A stretch of DNA of 63,909 nucleotides, counting the filler, from Octopus bimaculoides (taxonomy: Eukaryota): NCBI RefSeq assembly GCF_001194135.2. It is 7 parts of 7 records of this genome, joined end to end, with 100 filler letters (N's around TTAATTAATTAA, not from the genome) between each part and the next. Parts side by side here need not be neighbours in the genome. Positions count along the whole stretch, not along the records: positions 14,997 to 40,210 come from NC_068995.1; 6 more parts are not named here. One strand, given 5' to 3'. The translations under genes and the position numbers were made by a program. Shown here one piece after another: positions 14,997 to 38,220 of this stretch (the first letter of the stretch is position 1; every line of letters starts with the position of its first letter). Under the pieces are notes generated by a model. It ran no database searches and had not been told where the DNA came from. It worked only from the letters and a program-made list of their open reading frames with translations.

Positions 14997-15027
14997 TGTT
15001 TGTATTTAACTTTCAATTTTCGTTAGT

Positions 15028-15908
15028 TATGGAATTTACAGGTAGGATAGAACCGCTGTTTTGGAATTCATCTTTGAAGCATATCCCCATTCCATCTAGA
15101 AATGAATATATTTTGAAACTTATTAATAATATTAAGGATTTTATTACTAGAATTAAATGGAAAGTCTACTATAATAATTATAATATTTCTAATAATAACG
15201 ATGCAAATCATTCCAATTATATTAATTCAAAGTTTAAATCTAAAAAAGAACCCTCTTATAATAGGGATTTACAGATTTTAGAGGATAATATTTGGAAGGT
15301 GGTGAAAAATATTAAATTTCATAAATACCCAAATAGACATAATGATTATTTAAGAAATCTAGCTATTAAAATAAAACAAATGTGAAATATAGAAGGAATT
15401 ATAGTACAATAAGATAAAACTAGGAACCTGTATAAACTCGATGTTAAATTATTTGATAACCTATTAGAGAAAGAAATTAATAAAAAATATAAAATTGTTC
15501 CAAAAAATACTCTATATTCTATAAATAAGGCCTCTAAATTAATAATGATGAAATATGAGTTAGATAATAAAACTGAACCTTATGTAACTATGCACCCTAG
15601 AATTACTTTGAAAGACCATAAGGATAATTTTTATTCTGACCCTAAGTTAGGCTTATTTGTCCTTGGAAATCAGATCTAGGTAAATTAAGTAAGATCATTT
15701 TAGATAAATATATCGATAGATTAAATTATATTAATTACCTTAAATTATGGAATAGTAAGTACTATAGATACTTTAAAATTGTTTAATAATATTAAGAAAT
15801 CGTTAACATATACTATAGGTAAGAGGCTATCATTACTTTCTTCCAATTTAGAGATTTTCGAAAAACATGCACCTTATTACAATGAAGCCCTTCGTGAGGC
15901 GGGATTTA
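15028..15908 (+). mobile_element. Penelope-like retroelement, decayed RT N-terminal region with internal deletion
   Basis: KHIPIPSRNEYILKLI...FITRIKWK, Q*DKTRNLY, ITLKDHKDNF, KSDLGKLSKIILD, then SNLEIFEKHAPYYNEALREAGF; these match Penelope-like RT motifs (DKT, LKDHK). Stops and frameshifts present. Confidence 0.85.
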
Positions 15909-15911
15909 CTA

Positions 15912-15963
15912 GAGTGGCTGTGTGGTAAGTAGCTTGCTTACGAACCACATGGTTCTGGGTTCA
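15912..15963 (+). mobile_element. SINE tRNA-like head inserted at the Penelope junction
   Basis: GAGTGGCTGTGTGGTAAGTAGCTTGCTTACGAACCACATGGTTCTGGGTTCAAA is homologous to the head at 12341. Confidence 0.7.
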
Positions 15964-16339
15964 AAATTCGGAAATACAGATAAATAGAATTCAGCGAACA
16001 CATCGACGTTTGCGTTACTAACAAACAATCCAGCTTCAGAATTTTTCCCCTCTATAAACTCAGGGACGATGCAACCTGTAGTTAGTGCATTAGCAAAGTC
16101 ATATTTTATCATAAAATATAAACCCCTTTTGAATGCGTCCACCACAAATGACACTACTACAAGGGCCTTAGAATAATACCCACACAATTAAAAACGATAT
16201 ATTTAGAATAGTCACTACCCATGAATTTATTCAGAACAATTCCAATCACTCCTATTACAACCACAACAGGTCACTTTTAGGGCACTTGACCATTTAAGAG
16301 GATTCCACCAACATCCTACTACTGTCATACCACTCCCGT

Positions 16340-16505
16340 ATTTTTATTATTCTCTCTCTTCTTTTCCTACTGCCTCCTCCTCCTCCTCTTCTTCTTCTTC
16401 TTCTTCTTCTTCTTCTTCTTCTCTTCTTCTTCTTCTTCTTCTTCTTCTTCTTCTTCTTCTTCTTCTTCTCCTCCTCCTTTTTTTTCTTCTTCGCCGCCTC
16501 CTTCC
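16340..16505. repeat. (CTT)n/(CCT)n microsatellite
   Basis: Directly visible. Confidence 0.95.
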
Positions 16506-16924
16506 TCGGCTATTACCGCTGTTTAAACAATCAAAACCAAGAAATCATATCAAATATTCTTTTAGGACTGCTACTACTTGCTACAAAGCCATCACAAGAG
16601 AAAAAAGAGAGACAAACAGACAGAAAAAGGGAAAATGTCCCTTGTATTTGAAAACTATGGAAATTTTTTTTGAAATATTTCATTTAATTTTTCCTCAATT
16701 TAATTGATTTTCATCCTTTTAGTTCGTTTACGGGAAATCTTTTTCAGTACGCATATAAAAGCTATTTTATTATGTAGGCTACAGCCTAATGATACCAGTT
16801 CTCTTTGTAATTGGTAGGGAAGAACAGATGATGAAAGGAGAGAAAGGAATGCTAATAATAATGAAGAGGGAAGGCTGTGTGGTGAGGCTTGTTTTGATAT
16901 TTGTGCGGGATGGGTAGCATGACT

Positions 16925-19417
16925 CCTATCATCACACCATACAATCCCTTCTTTTGTTTCGGACACATACCAGTTGCCATTCACTAGATCCTCCGCTTTC
17001 ATTCTCTCCAAGACGTCTTGCATCATGGCAACTGTCCTCTCTCCCACTTTGTCTCTTCAGTTCACCGCCTCCAGCTTACCTCTTGATGTAGCTACATGCC
17101 GTTTGGAGTCATCATCCAACAGGATAGAACCTTCCTAGTTTCCCACACACTGAGAACAGTTCTTGCCTATTCATGTCCTTGCTCAACTCTAAAATCGCAT
17201 TTCCTCTTCGAAATACATGTCAATTCTCCTTAACTCTTTCGAGCTTGAGCTTCAGCACAGTGCTTCCTTCCTTAGCCTCCGATGGTTTTACAATCAATCC
17301 GAACCTCCTCAGGTGACCCACAATTTCCTCTGCCAATTCCTCACTTTCATCTACCAAAATGTCATCAATGTAGGAACTACTAGCCTGCTCCACTTTCTCC
17401 AACTTCCTTAACATCGCCATGAGAACCTTCGCCATTATTTTCTCTGAACTCAAGCCAAACCCCAGTAGAGTCAGACAGGATTTTCCGCCCTTGTACCTCA
17501 CCAATTGGTACCTCCACAATCCCTCAGGCACGTGGAGTGCAGATGTGCCGTCTTTAGACCGACGGTCGTAGTCGCCCCTGTCATCAGCTTCCACTCCCGC
17601 AAAGTGTCCCCGCAGATGTCCGCTGCTTTACTCCTCATATGGCACGACACATGCTCGTTCAACTCACGAAAATCTAACACTGATCGAACTTTATATTTTG
17701 ACGGCTGTACTATAGCCATCATTGGTAGCACACCACACTTCACTCCCTATTTCCACAATATTAAAATACCTCTCCTATCTATCTGTCCATCTCCCTCTTA
17801 CTCATTCCTAGCTTCTCTTTTCAGGGTGTGCCTGTAGCAATTCATCCTGTTTCTCAAAATGGGTGGAGAGAGGGATATCTTCCAGAAGTGACCCACTTTC
17901 CAGTTTGCTTCGAAATCAGCCTAGAAGTTTTCGTCTTCGATCTTGTCTATAGTATCTCTTCTCTCTCTCTCTGAACTCGACTTGTCGATCTTACGGCCTT
18001 CTTCCTCTGCTCTACACTTAGAGCATGCAGTACACCAGTGACCAAATTCCATTCCCGTATTTCCAACTGTCATGCCAACCAACCGGTGAATCACGTCCAT
18101 TCCTATTACTACGTCGACACCATCCAGTACCTCATTGACAACAATCACTTTCACATTCAACGTCGTTCCTTGTACCTCCAGCTCCACTACGCCAACGACT
18201 CTGCACCTAAACTCCTTAAGCTTCTCTGCACTCAGGCTGGTTTTTCCAGTCCAGTTCTCAACCATTTTCACTGTCAGCAGGATTATTGTGCAATCCGTAT
18301 AGACAAGGCCTCCCGCTTTTCTTGTCCTTATCAGAACCTTTTTTACATGCAGTGAACGTAGGTGAGACTTTAATCGAATGTCGGGCAGCTACCGCCGCAG
18401 TATCTTCCCTTTGTTTGTTTCCCTCTTTGCAAAGCTCGCTATATGCCAGGGCTGTTCACACGGGTAACATGTCACTTCAGATTTTAGTTCCTTGCAATCT
18501 CTAACCATGTGTGAATCCCGACACCTAAAATACAGCCTCATAAACGTCCATCTCGCCTAGCCCGTCATACTCCAGTTCCCGCTATTTGCCGCCTGCGTCT
18601 TCATCCTATTAGTCTCTGCCGCCAACGCTGCCTCGATATCACGTTTGTCGTTCTACGTCAATATTCACGTCTTATCTATCAAATCGCTCACCGACATCGT
18701 GTCGATATCTGGCAGTTGCTGCAACATCATTGATATATGATCGGAAAATCCGGTCACGAAAGCCAGGTTCACAATTCTCTCCATCGCTCCACCGGTAAAA
18801 CTAGCTAGCTAGCCCAGTCAATCTCCTTATCTCGCACACTTAGTCATCAACATGCTCCCCTGTCCAGCTTGCTGTATACATTAAAGGCTCATTTTTTATA
18901 CGCATCCTCCACGTTCTTTTTTTTACCTTTAGCTGAGTCACTTCATTCATTTCAACAAACTCAGAGCACTTTCTTCTAAGTACAGCATTAGGCTGACCAC
19001 GTCTTATATGTCCTGCAGCTTTGAAACGAGCCTCACTTTTTTTTTTATCTAGGCCTTCATCGGAAAACGGTCGCAAAAACATCGTTACCAATCCTTATCC
19101 TCGTTATCATGTTGAATGTCAACGGTAGAAAGGTAGAAGAAAAGAAAATCCCCACAACAGATAGACAACGTGCCGAACTAGCTTGTAGATGGGACGGCGC
19201 AAGTAAGCCGCTCTTACCTTATAACGAGCTTCAAACAGAGAGAAAACTACTCTCCACAGATATCAGAAAAACTTGTAGCATGAACCTAAACGCTTACGCT
19301 GCTTAATCTCTGGCTAGAATCTGCCCACTCCCTGAATTCGCTTTTCACAATAGATCGCTTCAGATGCCCGTTTCCTCGCTCACTTCTGCTCTTGACGTTT
19401 CCTTTCACTTTTCCACA
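16925..19417 (-). mobile_element. Ty3/Gypsy-type LTR retrotransposon, decayed, 3'-truncated within RNase H
   Basis: Gag start MITRIRIGNDV/LRPF at 19110; two Cys/His knuckles at ~18430-18530; degenerate protease (ALVYTDCT, VDVVIGMD); RT PMMAIVQPSKYKVRSVLDFRELN and SYIDDILV (17361-17372); RNase H start GIVWCD. Colinear with 32728-36788. Confidence 0.9.
19183..19417 (-). repeat. Putative 5' LTR of the 16.9-19.4 kb element (~235 bp, TG...CA)
   Basis: Plus strand TGTAGA...TTCCACA with short imperfect terminal inverted repeats; abuts the same 12-mer that flanks the 5' LTR of the second element. Confidence 0.6.
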
Positions 19418-30620: not shown

Positions 30621-30923
30621 GGCAGTTGTAAATTGTAAAGCATAACTGTCACCACTACTACATGAACCTGAAGATTGCATAGTTTAATGCATGAAAGTAC
30701 TAGTTCAATCAGAATGGACATTTAATATTCTATCATTTCATTATATTATATTATCTTATATTATACTATTGTAAGATTGTAAATAAAACATGAAAATCAA
30801 AGTTGGAATTTCTTTGAGTAATATATTCTTCTACACACAATCATACACACCCGTGTATACATATATTAAACTGGTCTACGTCTTAGAGTGTGCTTCTTCT
30901 TTCGTGTTTATGCTTTCTACAAA

Positions 30924-31004
<81 letters not shown>

Positions 31005-31254
31005 ATACATAGAAAATGGAGATTGGGAAGTTAATAATTATTATTAACAGCAAATTAAACATCTTCATTTACAACTGTTTCAATTAATAGATATTAAATT
31101 TGCCTTTATATGACCTGAGCATAGTACTTCATTTATATGTGTTTATGGATCCATTACAGCAGACTGAATGATAAGTTTATGATTTGTATTGTTATATGTT
31201 CGGGTGAGGTTAACACAACCTTTAATCGAAGTACATATATATTAATCAGATTGA

Positions 31255-32727: not shown

Positions 32728-32988
32728 AACAGAAAAAGAAGCAAAAGGGAGAAAGAAATACAGAGACCTTACCTGTTGACCGTCAAGAAAAAAAACACGT
32801 CAAGAAAAAAAACACGTCTTTCCACACTCACCGTCTCTCATCCAACTGCCCCACGTGCTTTCTGCCCACGCATGCCTCCGTGGCTCTTTCGCGGGTCCTT
32901 GCAGTCTTCACTTCCGTTTACCTCATCTGCAATCCTCTCCACGAACACCACATAGCTCATCATAGCCCATAACAACACAAACACCACA
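32728..32988 (-). repeat. 3' LTR (outer end lost in the gap)
   Basis: Roughly 85-90% identical by eye to 36527-36788; begins TGTGG on the minus strand; weak purine tract AGGGAG just upstream. Confidence 0.9.
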
Positions 32989-33057
32989 CGACTCCCTGAT
33001 CTACAGATCATTTAACCGGCTTTCCCACTCAGTCCTCGCTCCCGAATTCACACCTTA

Positions 33058-33432
33058 ATTGGTTTCATAATCAGCCACCCAGGGAGGTGGGTTACGCTCC
33101 CTCTATGGTCGCCGTGCGACCCCGAGACTGGCCTGAGTTCCTGGCACGCTGCCGCTGGCTTCATCATCTTGCCTACTGCTGCTGTCTTCATCATCTTGCC
33201 CACTGCTGCTGGTTCCATTCTCTGAGGCATTGGCAATCTTCCGCACATCCAAAACATGGCGTGGCATACCATCGACAGAGACGTTGTTCTTCGAATTGAT
33301 GGAGGCTATTGTTCCCTTTCCCCATCGTGATGTACACCGTGGGTGTACACCGTGGGGGTTTTACCCAAACTTCTTCCCCGACCTGCACGAAAGCGTGCTG
33401 TTCATCTCCCCCGGGTTGCATTGATGCAGCAC
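33058..33432 (-). pseudogene. Integrase C-terminal region
   Basis: FVQVGEEVWVKPP; NNVSVDGMPRHVLDVR; RRP*RERNPPPWVADY, a typical integrase tail. Confidence 0.75.
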
Positions 33433-33879
33433 NNNNNNNNNNNNNNNNNNNNNNNNNNNNNNNNNNNNNNNNNNNNNNNNNNNNNNNNNNNNNNNNNNNN
33501 NNNNNNNNNNNNNNNNNNNNNNNNNNNNNNNNNNNNNNNNNNNNNNNNNNNNNNNNNNNNNNNNNNNNNNNNNNNNNNNNNNNNNNNNNNNNNNNNNNNN
33601 NNNNNNNNNNNNNNNNNNNNNNNNNNNNNNNNNNNNNNNNNNNNNNNNNNNNNNNNNNNNNNNNNNNNNNNNNNNNNNNNNNNNNNNNNNNNNNNNNNNN
33701 NNNNNNNNNNNNNNNNNNNNNNNNNNNNNNNNNNNNNNNNNNNNNNNNNNNNNNNNNNNNNNNNNNNNNNNNNNNNNNNNNNNNNNNNNNNNNNNNNNNN
33801 NNNNNNNNNNNNNNNNNNNNNNNNNNNNNNNNNNNNNNNNNNNNNNNNNNNNNNNNNNNACTGCAGCCACAGCCTGCTC

Positions 33880-35230
33880 TGCATCCTCTGGCACCTGCAA
33901 CCAGGCTCGCTTTACCCTGGTCAGGACGTCTGCCCTATTCTTCTCAGAAGGCACAAAGATCACGCTCAGCTTCAGGTAGAACTTAGCAGTTAGTTCACGC
34001 AGTATCCCCAATCGACGCTTTACCAATATCTCTGCGGCCCCTTTGGTTCGCACCCTCCGCTCATTGGTGATGACTGCCGTCACCCAACCAAGTACAGTGG
34101 CCGAATCGGTCCTAATTTCTATGGTGCGCAGCCCTCACCTCAAGGCTAGGTTCACTCCCTTCAACACGGCATCCAAATACTCCACATTGATATGGTTGCA
34201 GCCATCCGTCTTCCTGAGCTAGTCTGCATCTTCCACCACGACGCCTCCCACTTGCAAGACAACCCGTGTTGCGATGCTACTGGCGTCACACCAAACGATC
34301 CCGCTCTTTGATTTGGGAACATACCAACTGCCCCTCACTGGATCCTCTGCTTTCACTCTGACCAAGACTTCCTGCATCATGTCGGTCTTCTTCTCCCCCA
34401 CTTTATCGTTCCACTTCGCTCCTTCGGCTCGTCTCTTGAGTAAGCTACATGCTGTCCCGAGCCATCCTGCAATCGGATAGTGTCCCACCAGCTTTCCACA
34501 CACCGAGAACCGTTCCCGTCTACTCATGCTGGTGCCCAGTTCGGGGATCTCGTTCCCTCACCGGAACACCAACGTGCCGGCCTTGTTTCTCCATAGCTTG
34601 AGGCCCAGTGCAGCGCCTCCCTCCATCGCCTCTGGTGGCTTGGCGATCAGTCCAAAACTCTTTAGGTGGCCTATGACCTCCGTTGCTGGCATTACGGTTT
34701 CATCCACCAGGATGTCATCGATATACGAATTGGTGGCCCTTTTTACTCTGTCCATCTTTCCCAGGATGACCTTGTGAATTATTGCCACAATCTTTGACGC
34801 TGAATTAGCCCGAACCCCAGCTTGGTCAGACAGTATGTCCAGCCCTTATACCTGACAAGCTAATGCTTCCACGGTCTCTCAGCCACATACACCTGCAGGT
34901 ATGCCGACTTCAAATCGACGATCGTGGAAACCCCTGTCATCTGCCTCCATTCTCGCAAGGTGTCTCCGCAGACATCTGTGGCCTCGCCGCCCGTATGACA
35001 TGATACGTGGTCATTCAGCTCTCGGAAGTCCAGCACTGGCCTGACCTTATGTTTTGTGGGCTGTACCACCGCCACCAGCGGCAGGACTCCGCTCTCTACT
35101 TCTTCTTCCCAAGGGATCAATATTCCCTCCTTAATCCACCGCTCCACCTCCCCCTCAAACTCGCTTCTGGCATCTCCTTTCAAAGTATGCTGGTAGCAGC
35201 CCACTTTATTTTTTAACGTCGGGGGCTCTC
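33880..35230 (-). pseudogene. Reverse transcriptase and RNase H (frameshifted)
   Basis: PLVAVVQPTKHKVRPVLDFRELN; DLKSAYLQ; SYIDDILV (34714-34725); WCDASSIA; TDSATV; KNRADVLTR. Confidence 0.9.
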
Positions 35231-35399
35231 CCTTCCAGTGCCACTCCACTGTCCACCTCTGGCCATCGAAGACAGCACGAAAGTCCTGGTCTTCAATGGT
35301 GTGTGTAGCATACTTTCCTTCGCGGTTCTCACCAATGTACGGTCTCGCCATACACGGTTTCCCCGCAAGCCCGAGCGTTACACCGGCCTCGTTGACAGT

Positions 35400-36464
35400 G
35401 ACACCTCCTAAACGAGTGATTGCATCCATCCCCATCACCACGTCAATCGCATCCACCAAGTAAGTGGCCAACTACAATTGCATGCAGCGTCAGCTTTGTT
35501 CCCTGCATCATAATCTGCGCATCTGTAATGCCTTCACCGAGTACCTCTCTTCCGTCGACTGCCCTTACACTACTCCCTCTACTCCACGTCTCTACCACTT
35601 CTGGTGTCATCAGGGTCGTCGTACAGCCCGTATCCACAAGGGCTCGCGACACCTTCCCCTCCACCAGAATGTCGACAACAGGTAACGATAAACGCGCCTC
35701 TCTTGATCCGGAGGGATAACTACCGGCGCAGTAGTCTTCCTTAGACCGCTTCTCCGCAGATATTGGCTGGCTATATGTCCTGTTTCTCGACAGCGGTAGC
35801 AAATGACTTCAGGCTTGGGTGACTTGCAGTCTCGCACCATGTGCGGGCCCTGACACTGGAAACACTGTCCTTTGAATGGCCGCACACGTTCCTTGTTTGA
35901 CCCATCTCCGCTACTCCTTGCTCGGCCACTTTTCGTTGTTGCCGTCGCTGCTACCGGTGTCGTCCTGCAACACGAAACTAGCACGCGAGCCCGAGAATTT
36001 AATGTCTGCCATCGCCATAGAGTTAACATTCGGCTGCTTTTGCAACTCGACTGACATGTGGTCAGAAAAGCCAGTCCCAAACGCTAACTTAACCGTTCGG
36101 TCCAGTGATTCACCTTCATATCCCGCCAGTTTAGCCAATCTCCTGAGTTTGTTGGCAAATACATCGACCTGATAGCCATTTCACTTTGCTTTCCCCAGGC
36201 GAGCGTACGCTTCGAACATTCCTTCTGCAAAGGCCTCCATCAAACGGATTTCTTTTTTTTTTTCGTGCTAAATTGGTTCCTTTCTTCCATTTCTTGGTAT
36301 AGCGCCAACGCCGAACCATCTAGGTACAGTGGTATAAAACTCGCTAAGTCATTTATCCCGTGGAGTTTCGCAACTAACTTCATCTTCTTCAACCAAGTGA
36401 CTACATCCGTGTCACCGCAAAACGGTTTGACTATATCGTTCGAAATACGGACTACACTCATCAT
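35400..36464 (-). pseudogene. Gag (two zinc knuckles) and aspartic protease
   Basis: MMSVVRISNDIVKPFCGDTDVVTWLKKMKLVAKL; QCFQCQGPHMVRDC; ICYRCRETGHIASQ; protease ALVDTGCTTTL (~35625-35634). Confidence 0.9.
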
Positions 36465-36480
36465 TCGTTTTTTTTTTTTT

Positions 36481-36496
36481 ATGGGCCGAAATAGCT
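36481..36496 (-). promoter_or_regulatory. Putative primer-binding site (non-canonical)
   Basis: AGCTATTTCGGC directly after the 5' LTR terminus ...CAACA; an equivalent AGCTAGTTCGGC follows the LTR of the 16.9-19.4 kb copy. Confidence 0.7.
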
Positions 36497-36788
36497 TGTT
36501 GTGTGATGGAGGAAAAAGAAAAAGGCAACAGAAAAAGAAGCAAAAGGAAGAAAGAAATAGAGACCTTACCTGCTGACCGAGGCGGGATGAGCGATCACTG
36601 TCAAGAAAAAAACACGTCCTTCCACACTCACCGTCTCTCATCGAACTGCCCCCCGTGCTTTCTGCCCACGCATGCCCCCGTGGCTCTTCAGCCAGCCTAT
36701 GCAGTCTTCACTTCAGTTTATCTCATCCGCAATCCTCTCCACGAACACTACATAGCTCATCACAGCCCATAACACCACAAGCACCACA
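36497..36788 (-). repeat. 5' LTR (292 bp, TG...CA)
   Basis: Plus strand TGTTGTGT...GCACCACA with an imperfect terminal inverted repeat; matches the 3' LTR from 36527 onward. Confidence 0.85.
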
Positions 36789-38179
36789 TTTTGTTTGTTT
36801 GCTTTTGCCTGAAGTTTTGGAGTATTTTTTTGCATACACTATCGCTAAAATATCAAACACTTACCAGACATATAATTGTATATCACCTTTAAAATATACA
36901 GATTCCAATGTCGACACAGAAGCTTTTATCAGAGTACCGCACATGTCAGATATTTGCATATCTCTGAGAAAGGTTATTCATTCACGAGACGAAATCATAG
37001 ACATGCACAAAACTACACTAAGTTGGCAATGAAGCAATCGCCGAAATAATCCATAAAATAACAACGAAAAGTCATCATCGTATCCCTATTTATGAAAAAA
37101 CACCAAGAGTAAATGTGCAGTCCATCTGAGCATAGAATTTTTCCCAAGTTCTATGTATCTTCAGAAACAACTCAAAATTCGTCAAATTAATTTCATGTCG
37201 TACATGTAACAAAACTTGTATGGTATAAATAAATGTACAACAAAATTATCTTTTATTGACCTATATGGCTGTCTATGTGCATATGTATTTGTGTGTATCG
37301 AAGCGTGCGTGTGCGTACTTATATTTATGTAGGATATCCCAGATATGGTTTTTTTTTCTATGGGTTCTAGTTGTGTGAAACGTACTTAAAATAGGGACAC
37401 ATACATTCAAGTCAAAATGAAAAGATAGCTAAACTGTTGACAGAACATTTTAATCACCCATCTGTCATTCATTCGTTCGTACTGTTTGTGAATGAATGAA
37501 ACAGTTCTGGTAAGAAAAAAAAATGAAATTACGTAGACTTAAAGAAAGGTAAAATAGAACAAGTATTCAATTGTATTACTTGGCTTTCGATATCACAGGT
37601 TACTAAATTTAACCAGAGCTGGCCATTTCTGTTGAAAGGGTATGTGTGTCTGGATGTTGTTATTGCATAGCTTAGGTTAGCTCTGATTGAACTGGTCTGT
37701 ATATCTGTAATATGGTAGTTTGTGTGTATGTGTACGTATGTGTGTGTATGCGTGTGTGTGGAGGTAAATAAGTTTCTACATAAGCACAGTAAATTTTATA
37801 TATGCTTATATGAACTCAAAAAATTACTTATGTGTCTAAATGCACACACAGGCACACACACATACATACACATATACACACACGCATACATACATACATA
37901 CATACATACATACATACATACATACATACAAGCACACACACACACACTCAAATACACGTGACACGTTTCTTTCACTGTCATACAGAGACCTACTCATACA
38001 TGCACAACACGTGCGTGTGTGTGTGTGTGTTTGCGCGCGCGCGCTTGAAATCCTGCTTTAATAATGTGTATGTATGCATCACAAGTACAGTGTCATAAAA
38101 ACAGGCATGCGCAATCATACCAAAATTACATACTTTCATACATGCATATATACATACATACATACATACATACATACAT

Positions 38180-38220
<41 letters not shown>

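Follow-up and report, generated by a model that had tools for sequence, protein, structure and literature searches.

Element A, a decayed long terminal repeat (LTR) retrotransposon of Octopus bimaculoides, carries directly after its 5' LTR a 12-nt sequence whose complement is identical to the 5' end of tRNA-Phe(GAA). The element lies in the window, i.e. the whole stretch of DNA analyzed here (63,909 nt from assembly GCF_001194135.2, of which positions 14,997-40,210 come from NC_068995.1). We propose, with a probability of roughly 0.55 as judged from sequence comparisons, that this 12-mer is the minus-strand primer-binding site, and that the primer would be nucleotides 1-12 of a host tRNA with its 3'-OH at position 12, the tRNA being tRNA-Phe(GAA) for the class of site found in the window. 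The observation itself is real and far beyond chance, and the window is a sample of a feature found across a whole family of elements. The LTRs of element A, its site and the corresponding site of a second copy, element B, are:

36788..36497, minus strand: 5' LTR of element A, 292 nt, starts TGTGG and ends ACAACA; direct repeat with 32806-32988 at 90% identity
36496..36485, minus strand: putative 12-nt primer-binding site of element A, AGCTATTTCGGC (= agctatttcggc), beginning at the first base after the 5' LTR
32728..32988, minus strand: 3' LTR of element A, interrupted by an assembly gap of N
19183..19172, minus strand: the same site in element B, AGCTAGTTCGGC, 11 of 12 positions identical, directly after an LTR-like ...CTACA

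The LTR boundaries of element A were set by comparing its two LTR copies, both of which open with TGTGGTG (at 36788 and 32988). The 5' LTR terminates in ...CACACAACA (also given as ...cctccatcacacaaca), with 36497 as its last base. A first-pass annotation, made from the DNA of the window, had assigned a non-canonical primer-binding site to 36481-36496, a range that corresponds to the 12-mer plus the CCAT that follows it. The 12-mer indeed sits where a primer-binding site is located, the end of the LTR having been placed correctly, and its non-canonical character was confirmed, as no TGG follows the LTR of element A and the sequence there is not a canonical tRNA 3'-end site.

A string search of published papers showed that the complement of the site, GCCGAAATAGCT, equals the first 12 nucleotides of human tRNA-Phe(GAA) at all 12 positions. 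Forward primers for human Phe(GAA)-tRNA that open with this 12-mer are printed in PMC10505166 and PMC2175372, and a 34-nt tRNA fragment opening with the same 12 nucleotides in PMC12025293, so that the complementarity to nucleotides 1-12 has three printed sources. By our own estimate, which sets a few tens of tRNA 5' ends against the 4^12 12-mers that can exist, the probability of a 12/12 match to a tRNA 5' end arising by chance is about 3e-6. PMC2175372 also prints a reverse primer for the 3' end of tRNA-Phe, which gives the expected form of a canonical Phe site; such a site, of at least 11 nt, was absent from the window and from all 88 family loci collected for this analysis (L001-L085 and L206-L208; 5 found by exact protein, 80 from metagenomes and 3 from named genomes). 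The sense strand at the site also resembles the 3' acceptor strand of tRNA-Phe. This resemblance merely reflects the self-complementarity of the acceptor stem; the remaining five bases of the site pair with nucleotides 8-12, and no conservation is seen at the base that follows the 12-mer. In a viral collection, phage and bacterial tRNAs for Thr, Phe, Lys, Met or Arg bear the same 12-mers, from which it follows only that a tRNA 5' end of this kind is nothing unusual; for eukaryotic hosts the finding is uninformative.

Element B is an older member of the family, 17 kb from element A (window 16931-19400, minus strand). The first-pass annotation had already reported this diverged copy; the 11/12 match at the same place stood, and its coordinates had to be shifted by one base. 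With up to one mismatch the 12-mer occurs twice in the window against 0.13 occurrences expected, and none of 100 shuffled sequences reached two. Each of the two lies on the minus strand, where an LTR-like ...ACA immediately precedes it and a homologous gag start follows downstream; the surrounding LTR and leader DNA is too diverged for alignment. Since both window copies are dead, a chance resemblance in decayed DNA has to be considered. We regard it as next to impossible, given the excess in the window and the results of the family survey, which refuted it. In nearly every locus with a gag start, the best match to the 12-mer was found directly after ...ACA, mostly 12-90 nt upstream of gag. 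At least 100 nt of DNA upstream of gag was available in 31 loci, of which 23 contain ACA followed by AGCT[AG][TC]NNNNG[GC] (the LTR end, then AGCTAT-NNN-GGC), and 27 fit the 12-mer pattern when the ACA is disregarded, whereas the strict pattern occurred once in the 331 kb of opposite strand that served as a control. Copies with LTR ends that are 99-100% identical retain the site. The motif is thus conserved across copies, in the second window copy as well as in a large family.

Comparison of complete relatives located the site with respect to the LTR. In eight of them, whose LTR ends are 87-100% identical (96-100% in seven), the last bases of the 3' LTR are ...ACA, and the DNA beyond is unrelated, with no 12-mer at that place. 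ACA therefore closes the LTR, and the internal part of the element opens with the 12-mer. Since the start of DNA synthesis sets the U5 boundary, the 3' end of the primer is expected to pair with base 1 of the site, which corresponds to tRNA nucleotide 12, and DNA synthesis would start opposite the A that precedes the 12-mer. The geometry put forward at the outset, with the 3' end of the primer at tRNA position 12, follows from this placement of the LTR boundary. One locus (L028, at 1228 and 5250) is a tandem arrangement, in which two elements appear to share an LTR and the 12-mer is found again directly after the 3' LTR. An information profile over 46 distinct contexts, in which the flanks and the middle columns alone are informative as the contexts were gathered with a pattern fixing several columns, gave less than 0.5 bit from position +13 onward and before position -4, and inside the 12-mer only positions 7-9 vary. 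Conservation ends at base 12, i.e. at tRNA nucleotide 1. The invariant part of the site pairs with tRNA nucleotides 8-12, a region conserved among tRNAs, and the variable part with nucleotides 4-6 of the acceptor stem.

The sites fall into about ten discrete classes that differ only in the middle triplet, the one that pairs with tRNA nucleotides 4-6. The triplets TTC (the window class), CTA, CGC, CAC and CCC recur, and AGC, TAC, CCG, CTC and TCC are single cases. Each of the common classes was found in many elements with unrelated flanks, and in a tree of single reverse transcriptase (RT) segments the classes are partly clade-specific yet polyphyletic; the crab and mantis shrimp copies belong to class CTA and the sea slug copy to class TTC. 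The single CCG case (L058), which is correctly placed between the end of the LTR and gag, complements at all 12 positions the 5' end of human tRNA-Lys3, as given by the start of the tRNA-Lys3 primer printed in PMC2175372. Both eukaryotic tRNAs of this 5' architecture that were met in the analysis (Phe and Lys3) are therefore represented among the site classes. As far as sequence comparison goes, discrete, recurring and polyphyletic classes fit a small set of trans-acting primers. The assignment of tRNA-Phe as the partner holds for the window class, but the trait is not Phe-specific, being spread over some ten classes of which one matches tRNA-Lys3.

A partner supplied in trans is to be set against self-priming of the Tf1/sushi type, in which the start of the element's own transcript would fold onto the site and be cut to give the primer. 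The shortness of the site (12 nt, compared with 11 nt in Tf1) and the absence of TGG would suit such a mechanism, and two candidate partners were noticed: a 10/12 complement 175 nt upstream of the site in L002 and a loose one near the LTR start of element A. Neither near-match is conserved. The one in element A, 20 nt into the LTR, was dismissed as a chance match, the corresponding part of the L001 LTR start being unpaired (comparison by eye). Complementarity was then scored, counting Watson-Crick and G:U pairs, between each element and either its own 12-mer or the 12-mers of the other classes. The mean best scores for the own and the other classes were 8.46 vs 8.53 in the upstream 700 nt (36 sites) and 9.27 vs 9.34 in the whole element (53 sites), i.e. 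no class-matched complement was present inside the elements and the motif does not match the element's own transcript, a match that the first-pass annotation had listed as fatal to its reading. Moreover, the same 12-mers were met again in elements with LTRs too different to align; since the LTRs are unrelated and the 12-mer is the same, the partner must be supplied in trans. Self-priming was rejected on these grounds, and we consider it very unlikely.

Several results weigh against our proposal that the trans-acting partner is the 5' terminus of a tRNA. The common classes CTA, CGC, CAC and CCC could be assigned to no eukaryotic tRNA in the literature searched, and no tRNA gene was found in the window piece, in 30 related loci or in three 20-kb loci of the named hosts. 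All classes share GCC at tRNA nucleotides 1-3 and nearly always A at nucleotide 7, which is not a general feature of tRNAs and calls for an argument from mis-priming or for a requirement of the enzyme. The leader and U5 showed no extra complementarity to other parts of tRNA-Phe beyond that of control classes, and a 12-nt 5' tRNA fragment ending in the D stem is not a commonly reported size. Finally, the information profile comes from pattern-selected contexts, and the evidence as a whole is sequence anatomy. In the literature, the complements of the other classes, as DNA and as RNA strings, matched no tRNA listings, just unrelated primers.

The absence of a tRNA match for most classes would also be expected if the 12-mer were a true primer-binding site used by some other host small RNA, one with a 3' end reading ...GCCNNNAUAGCU and unrelated to tRNA; the constant GCC and AUAGCU could then indicate a single RNA family with a variable middle. 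Two classes, however, equal the exact 5' termini of tRNA-Phe and tRNA-Lys3, conservation stops where the tRNA ends, and a search of the window piece against Rfam found nothing. We know of no alternative RNA with such a 3' end, and we consider this explanation unlikely.

It is also conceivable that the 12-mer is a cis-acting signal of another kind, e.g. for packaging, dimerization or protein binding, and that priming takes place elsewhere, including from an internal 2'-OH of an intact tRNA. The site opens with the palindrome AGCT, and conserved sequences other than TGG are known at the place of the primer-binding site in GalEa, a fungal copia element with a hairpin site (PMC5445492), and in Skipper, which has a polypyrimidine tract (PMC5006619). 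Those elements resemble the present family in that the conservation is family-wide, but no RNA partner was identified for them, whereas in the present family an exact tRNA partner exists for two classes, and the 12-mer lacks an arm with which it could form a hairpin. The spacing between the site and the LTR end is zero in all relatives, and this boundary itself marks the start of DNA synthesis; discrete classes equal to tRNA 5' ends are not expected of a protein-binding site, and no canonical TGG site lies nearby. A cis-signal is therefore improbable in our judgement, and priming from an internal hydroxyl, which the first-pass annotation had offered as an option, found no support of its own.

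Based on these comparisons, priming by a 5'-terminal tRNA piece is partly supported and is the best available, if unproven, explanation of the site, for a trait that is broader than tRNA-Phe. A possible sequence of events is as follows. The nucleocapsid-like part of Gag, with its two CCHC knuckles, may help to unwind the acceptor stem together with the first part of the D stem, so that tRNA nucleotides 1-12 could anneal to the site. The duplex would end exactly at nucleotide 12, because nucleotides 13-15 (as printed) cannot pair with the LTR terminus ACA. A cut after nucleotide 12 would yield a 12-nt RNA, the 3'-OH of which would be extended into U5. The cut might be made by the element's RNase H at the end of the duplex, by analogy with Tf1, or a 5' tRNA fragment made by the host might be used instead. 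Plus-strand strong-stop synthesis would then copy the primer up to its 5' end, which would fix the length of the site at 12 nt and give the sharp end of conservation. In retroviruses, the site of the progeny is copied from the primer. Because of this, occasional mis-priming by another tRNA that shares GCC...AUAGCU could convert the middle triplet and so create the discrete classes. Extended to the whole lineage, the proposal is that a widespread, recently active group of elements in marine invertebrates uses as primer the first 12 nucleotides at the 5' end of host tRNAs, among them Phe and Lys, with a cut after position 12 in the D stem and the length of the primer setting the 12-nt site; for this extended version, the sequence evidence leaves us evenly balanced between acceptance and doubt.

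The proposed primer shares features with those of several known systems. Copia and Ty5 are primed by a tRNA half with its end in the anticodon arm, their site being complementary to an internal stretch of tRNA-iMet. As in these elements, the primer here would be a 5' piece of a tRNA and not its CCA end, and the site lacks TGG and abuts the 5' LTR. Unlike in these elements, the site is not an internal tRNA-iMet complement: it pairs with the very 5' terminus of the tRNA (nucleotides 1-12, those of tRNA-Phe in the window), the pairing ends in the D stem, and the classes are Phe, Lys-like or other. The order of the domains, RT-RNase H-integrase, also differs from that of copia, for which use of a 5' half of tRNA-iMet is documented (PMC10275265, citing Kikuchi et al. 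1986). In Tf1, the 11 bases that open the element's own RNA pair with an 11-nt site and RNase H cuts after nucleotide 11 (PMC7175516). The family described here would share with Tf1/sushi elements a very short site and a short RNA primer whose 3' end is cut, as we propose, at the end of an RNA:RNA duplex, but the partner of Tf1 is its own RNA, whereas the present elements have no internal complement. With a canonical tRNA-Phe 3'-end site, the site in the window would have in common the tRNA and the place after U5; a canonical site, about 18 nt long, has TGG as its first bases, whereas that of the window complements the opposite strand of the acceptor stem plus nucleotides 8-12.

No description of a primer-binding site for a tRNA 5' terminus was found in the searched literature, in which we met only general reviews; the literature check raised by the first-pass annotation thus gave no prior description, in a search that covered subscription journals thinly, so that an older description is possible. 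If correct, the proposal would add a third way of using a tRNA as a primer, beside the 3' end and the copia-type half, and a new primer solution, intermediate between the tRNA 5' half of copia and the short RNA of Tf1, which is cut where a duplex ends. It would also tie 5' tRNA fragments to the replication of retroelements. Standard LTR annotation seeks complements of tRNA 3' ends only and would score the whole family as lacking a primer-binding site.

The family to which elements A and B belong is large. A search of a protein library with the RT piece returned more than 1000 relatives, 104 of them at E < 1e-30; where a host is named, it is a porcelain crab, a mantis shrimp or a sea slug. Intact relatives encode single polyproteins of about 1150-1230 residues with protease, RT (a weak Pfam match), DUF7047, an RNase H of the PF00075/PF13456 type and integrase, and the elements are about 4-4.5 kb long. 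DUF7047 (Pfam PF23088) was present between RT and RNase H in the window piece and in all six long relatives scanned. Against solved structures, a profile of 14 relatives matched retroviral integrases and the RTs of foamy virus and HIV-2, and no Ty3 chain, i.e. the RT and integrase of the lineage concerned are closer to retroviral than to Ty3 proteins among solved structures. Together these features point to a distinct family of retrovirus-like LTR retrotransposons with the order gag-protease-RT-DUF7047-RNase H-integrase. Complete copies from Petrolisthes manimaculis (L206), Plakobranchus ocellatus (L207) and Oratosquilla oratoria (L208) have LTR ends that are 99-100% identical over the last 100 nt, which suggests recent activity of the family in these hosts.

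The lay-out resembles that of Odin, a group of LTR elements from sea anemones (PMC9040795), which likewise lack env and carry an extra domain that separates RT from a cellular/retroviral-type RNase H; the retroviral matches of the family's integrase and RT among solved structures are a further point of resemblance. A dual RNase H, with a degenerate tether and a newly acquired RNase H, characterizes Odin; in the present family, DUF7047 is followed by the PF00075/PF13456-type RNase H. Membership in Odin was considered and dismissed, as the RTs are not closely related: the RT is 25% identical to the Odin RT row from the supplement of PMC9040795 (pairwise, over 208 residues, E = 2e-8), and because of this divergence the family is a separate lineage. 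Odin elements are also longer (about 6-7 kb vs about 4-4.5 kb), and the named hosts of the present family are crustaceans and a sea slug. The Odin paper (PMC9040795) is silent on primer sites. The remaining parts of the two window elements are:

36465..36484, minus strand: short leader of element A, from the site to the gag ATG, consisting of CCAT, 13 A and CGA; relatives do not conserve the leader
33184..36464, minus strand: broken gag-pol of element A, with gag (two CCHC knuckles), protease, RT (YIDD), DUF7047, RNase H and the C-terminus of integrase
32989..33000, minus strand: weak purine-rich stretch immediately preceding the 3' LTR of element A, a possible remnant of a polypurine tract
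16931..19110, minus strand: broken, 3'-truncated gag-pol remnant of element B, with the gag start, CCHC, protease, RT and part of DUF7047/RNase H

Element A has the two direct LTRs, opening with TG and closing with CA, that define an LTR retrotransposon, and complete LTR pairs are present in relatives; the order gag CCHC, aspartic protease, RT, RNase H and integrase was found in the window pieces together with the intact relatives. The gag ATG of element A is at 36464, and the DUF7047 match has E = 1.6e-21 (Pfam). With at least three frameshifts, about 14 in-frame stops and an assembly gap that covers most of the integrase, the element is dead. Element B, the gag start of which (at 19110) is homologous to that of element A, is dead as well, with at least two frameshifts and about 11 stops; the two elements are about 70% identical in one RT stretch, as read by eye, and no 3' LTR was found for element B. 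Relatives lack the run of 13 A found in the leader of element A (36468-36480). One relative has AAGGGGGGA immediately ahead of its LTR, to be compared with the purine-rich stretch of element A.

In size, the family presumably resembles Cigr-1, which we take to be a small Ciona element with a single open reading frame (ORF). The Cigr-1 clade of Ty3/gypsy is mentioned in PMC6238403.

In one clade, TGGTGCCGAA, equal to the opening 10 nt of a canonical site for the tRNA-Phe 3' end, was found near the start of gag (L018 at 3478, L056 at 1770, L076 at 675, L081 at 2097 and L084 at 547). Where mapped (L018, L056 and L076), it lies 31-41 nt downstream of the 12-mer, within a conserved stretch of the gag start, and it probably reflects coding conservation, odd though the coincidence is. 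Many of the contigs of about 4 kb (L001, L002, L008, L012, L014, L058 and others) are circular permutations of one element, running from the end of pol through the LTR and the 12-mer to the start of gag, which could result from collapse of the assembly graph at the LTR or from circular or tandem forms. The window piece that holds both elements is repeat-rich draft sequence, with several gaps of N and long simple repeats of (CTT)n, (AT)n/(AC)n and (ACAT)n at 16339-16514, 30910-31012 and 37790-38220. Its first part, 14997-16200, is AT-rich (26% G+C), and the ORFs there, e.g. 15029-15385 on the plus strand, have no Pfam match.
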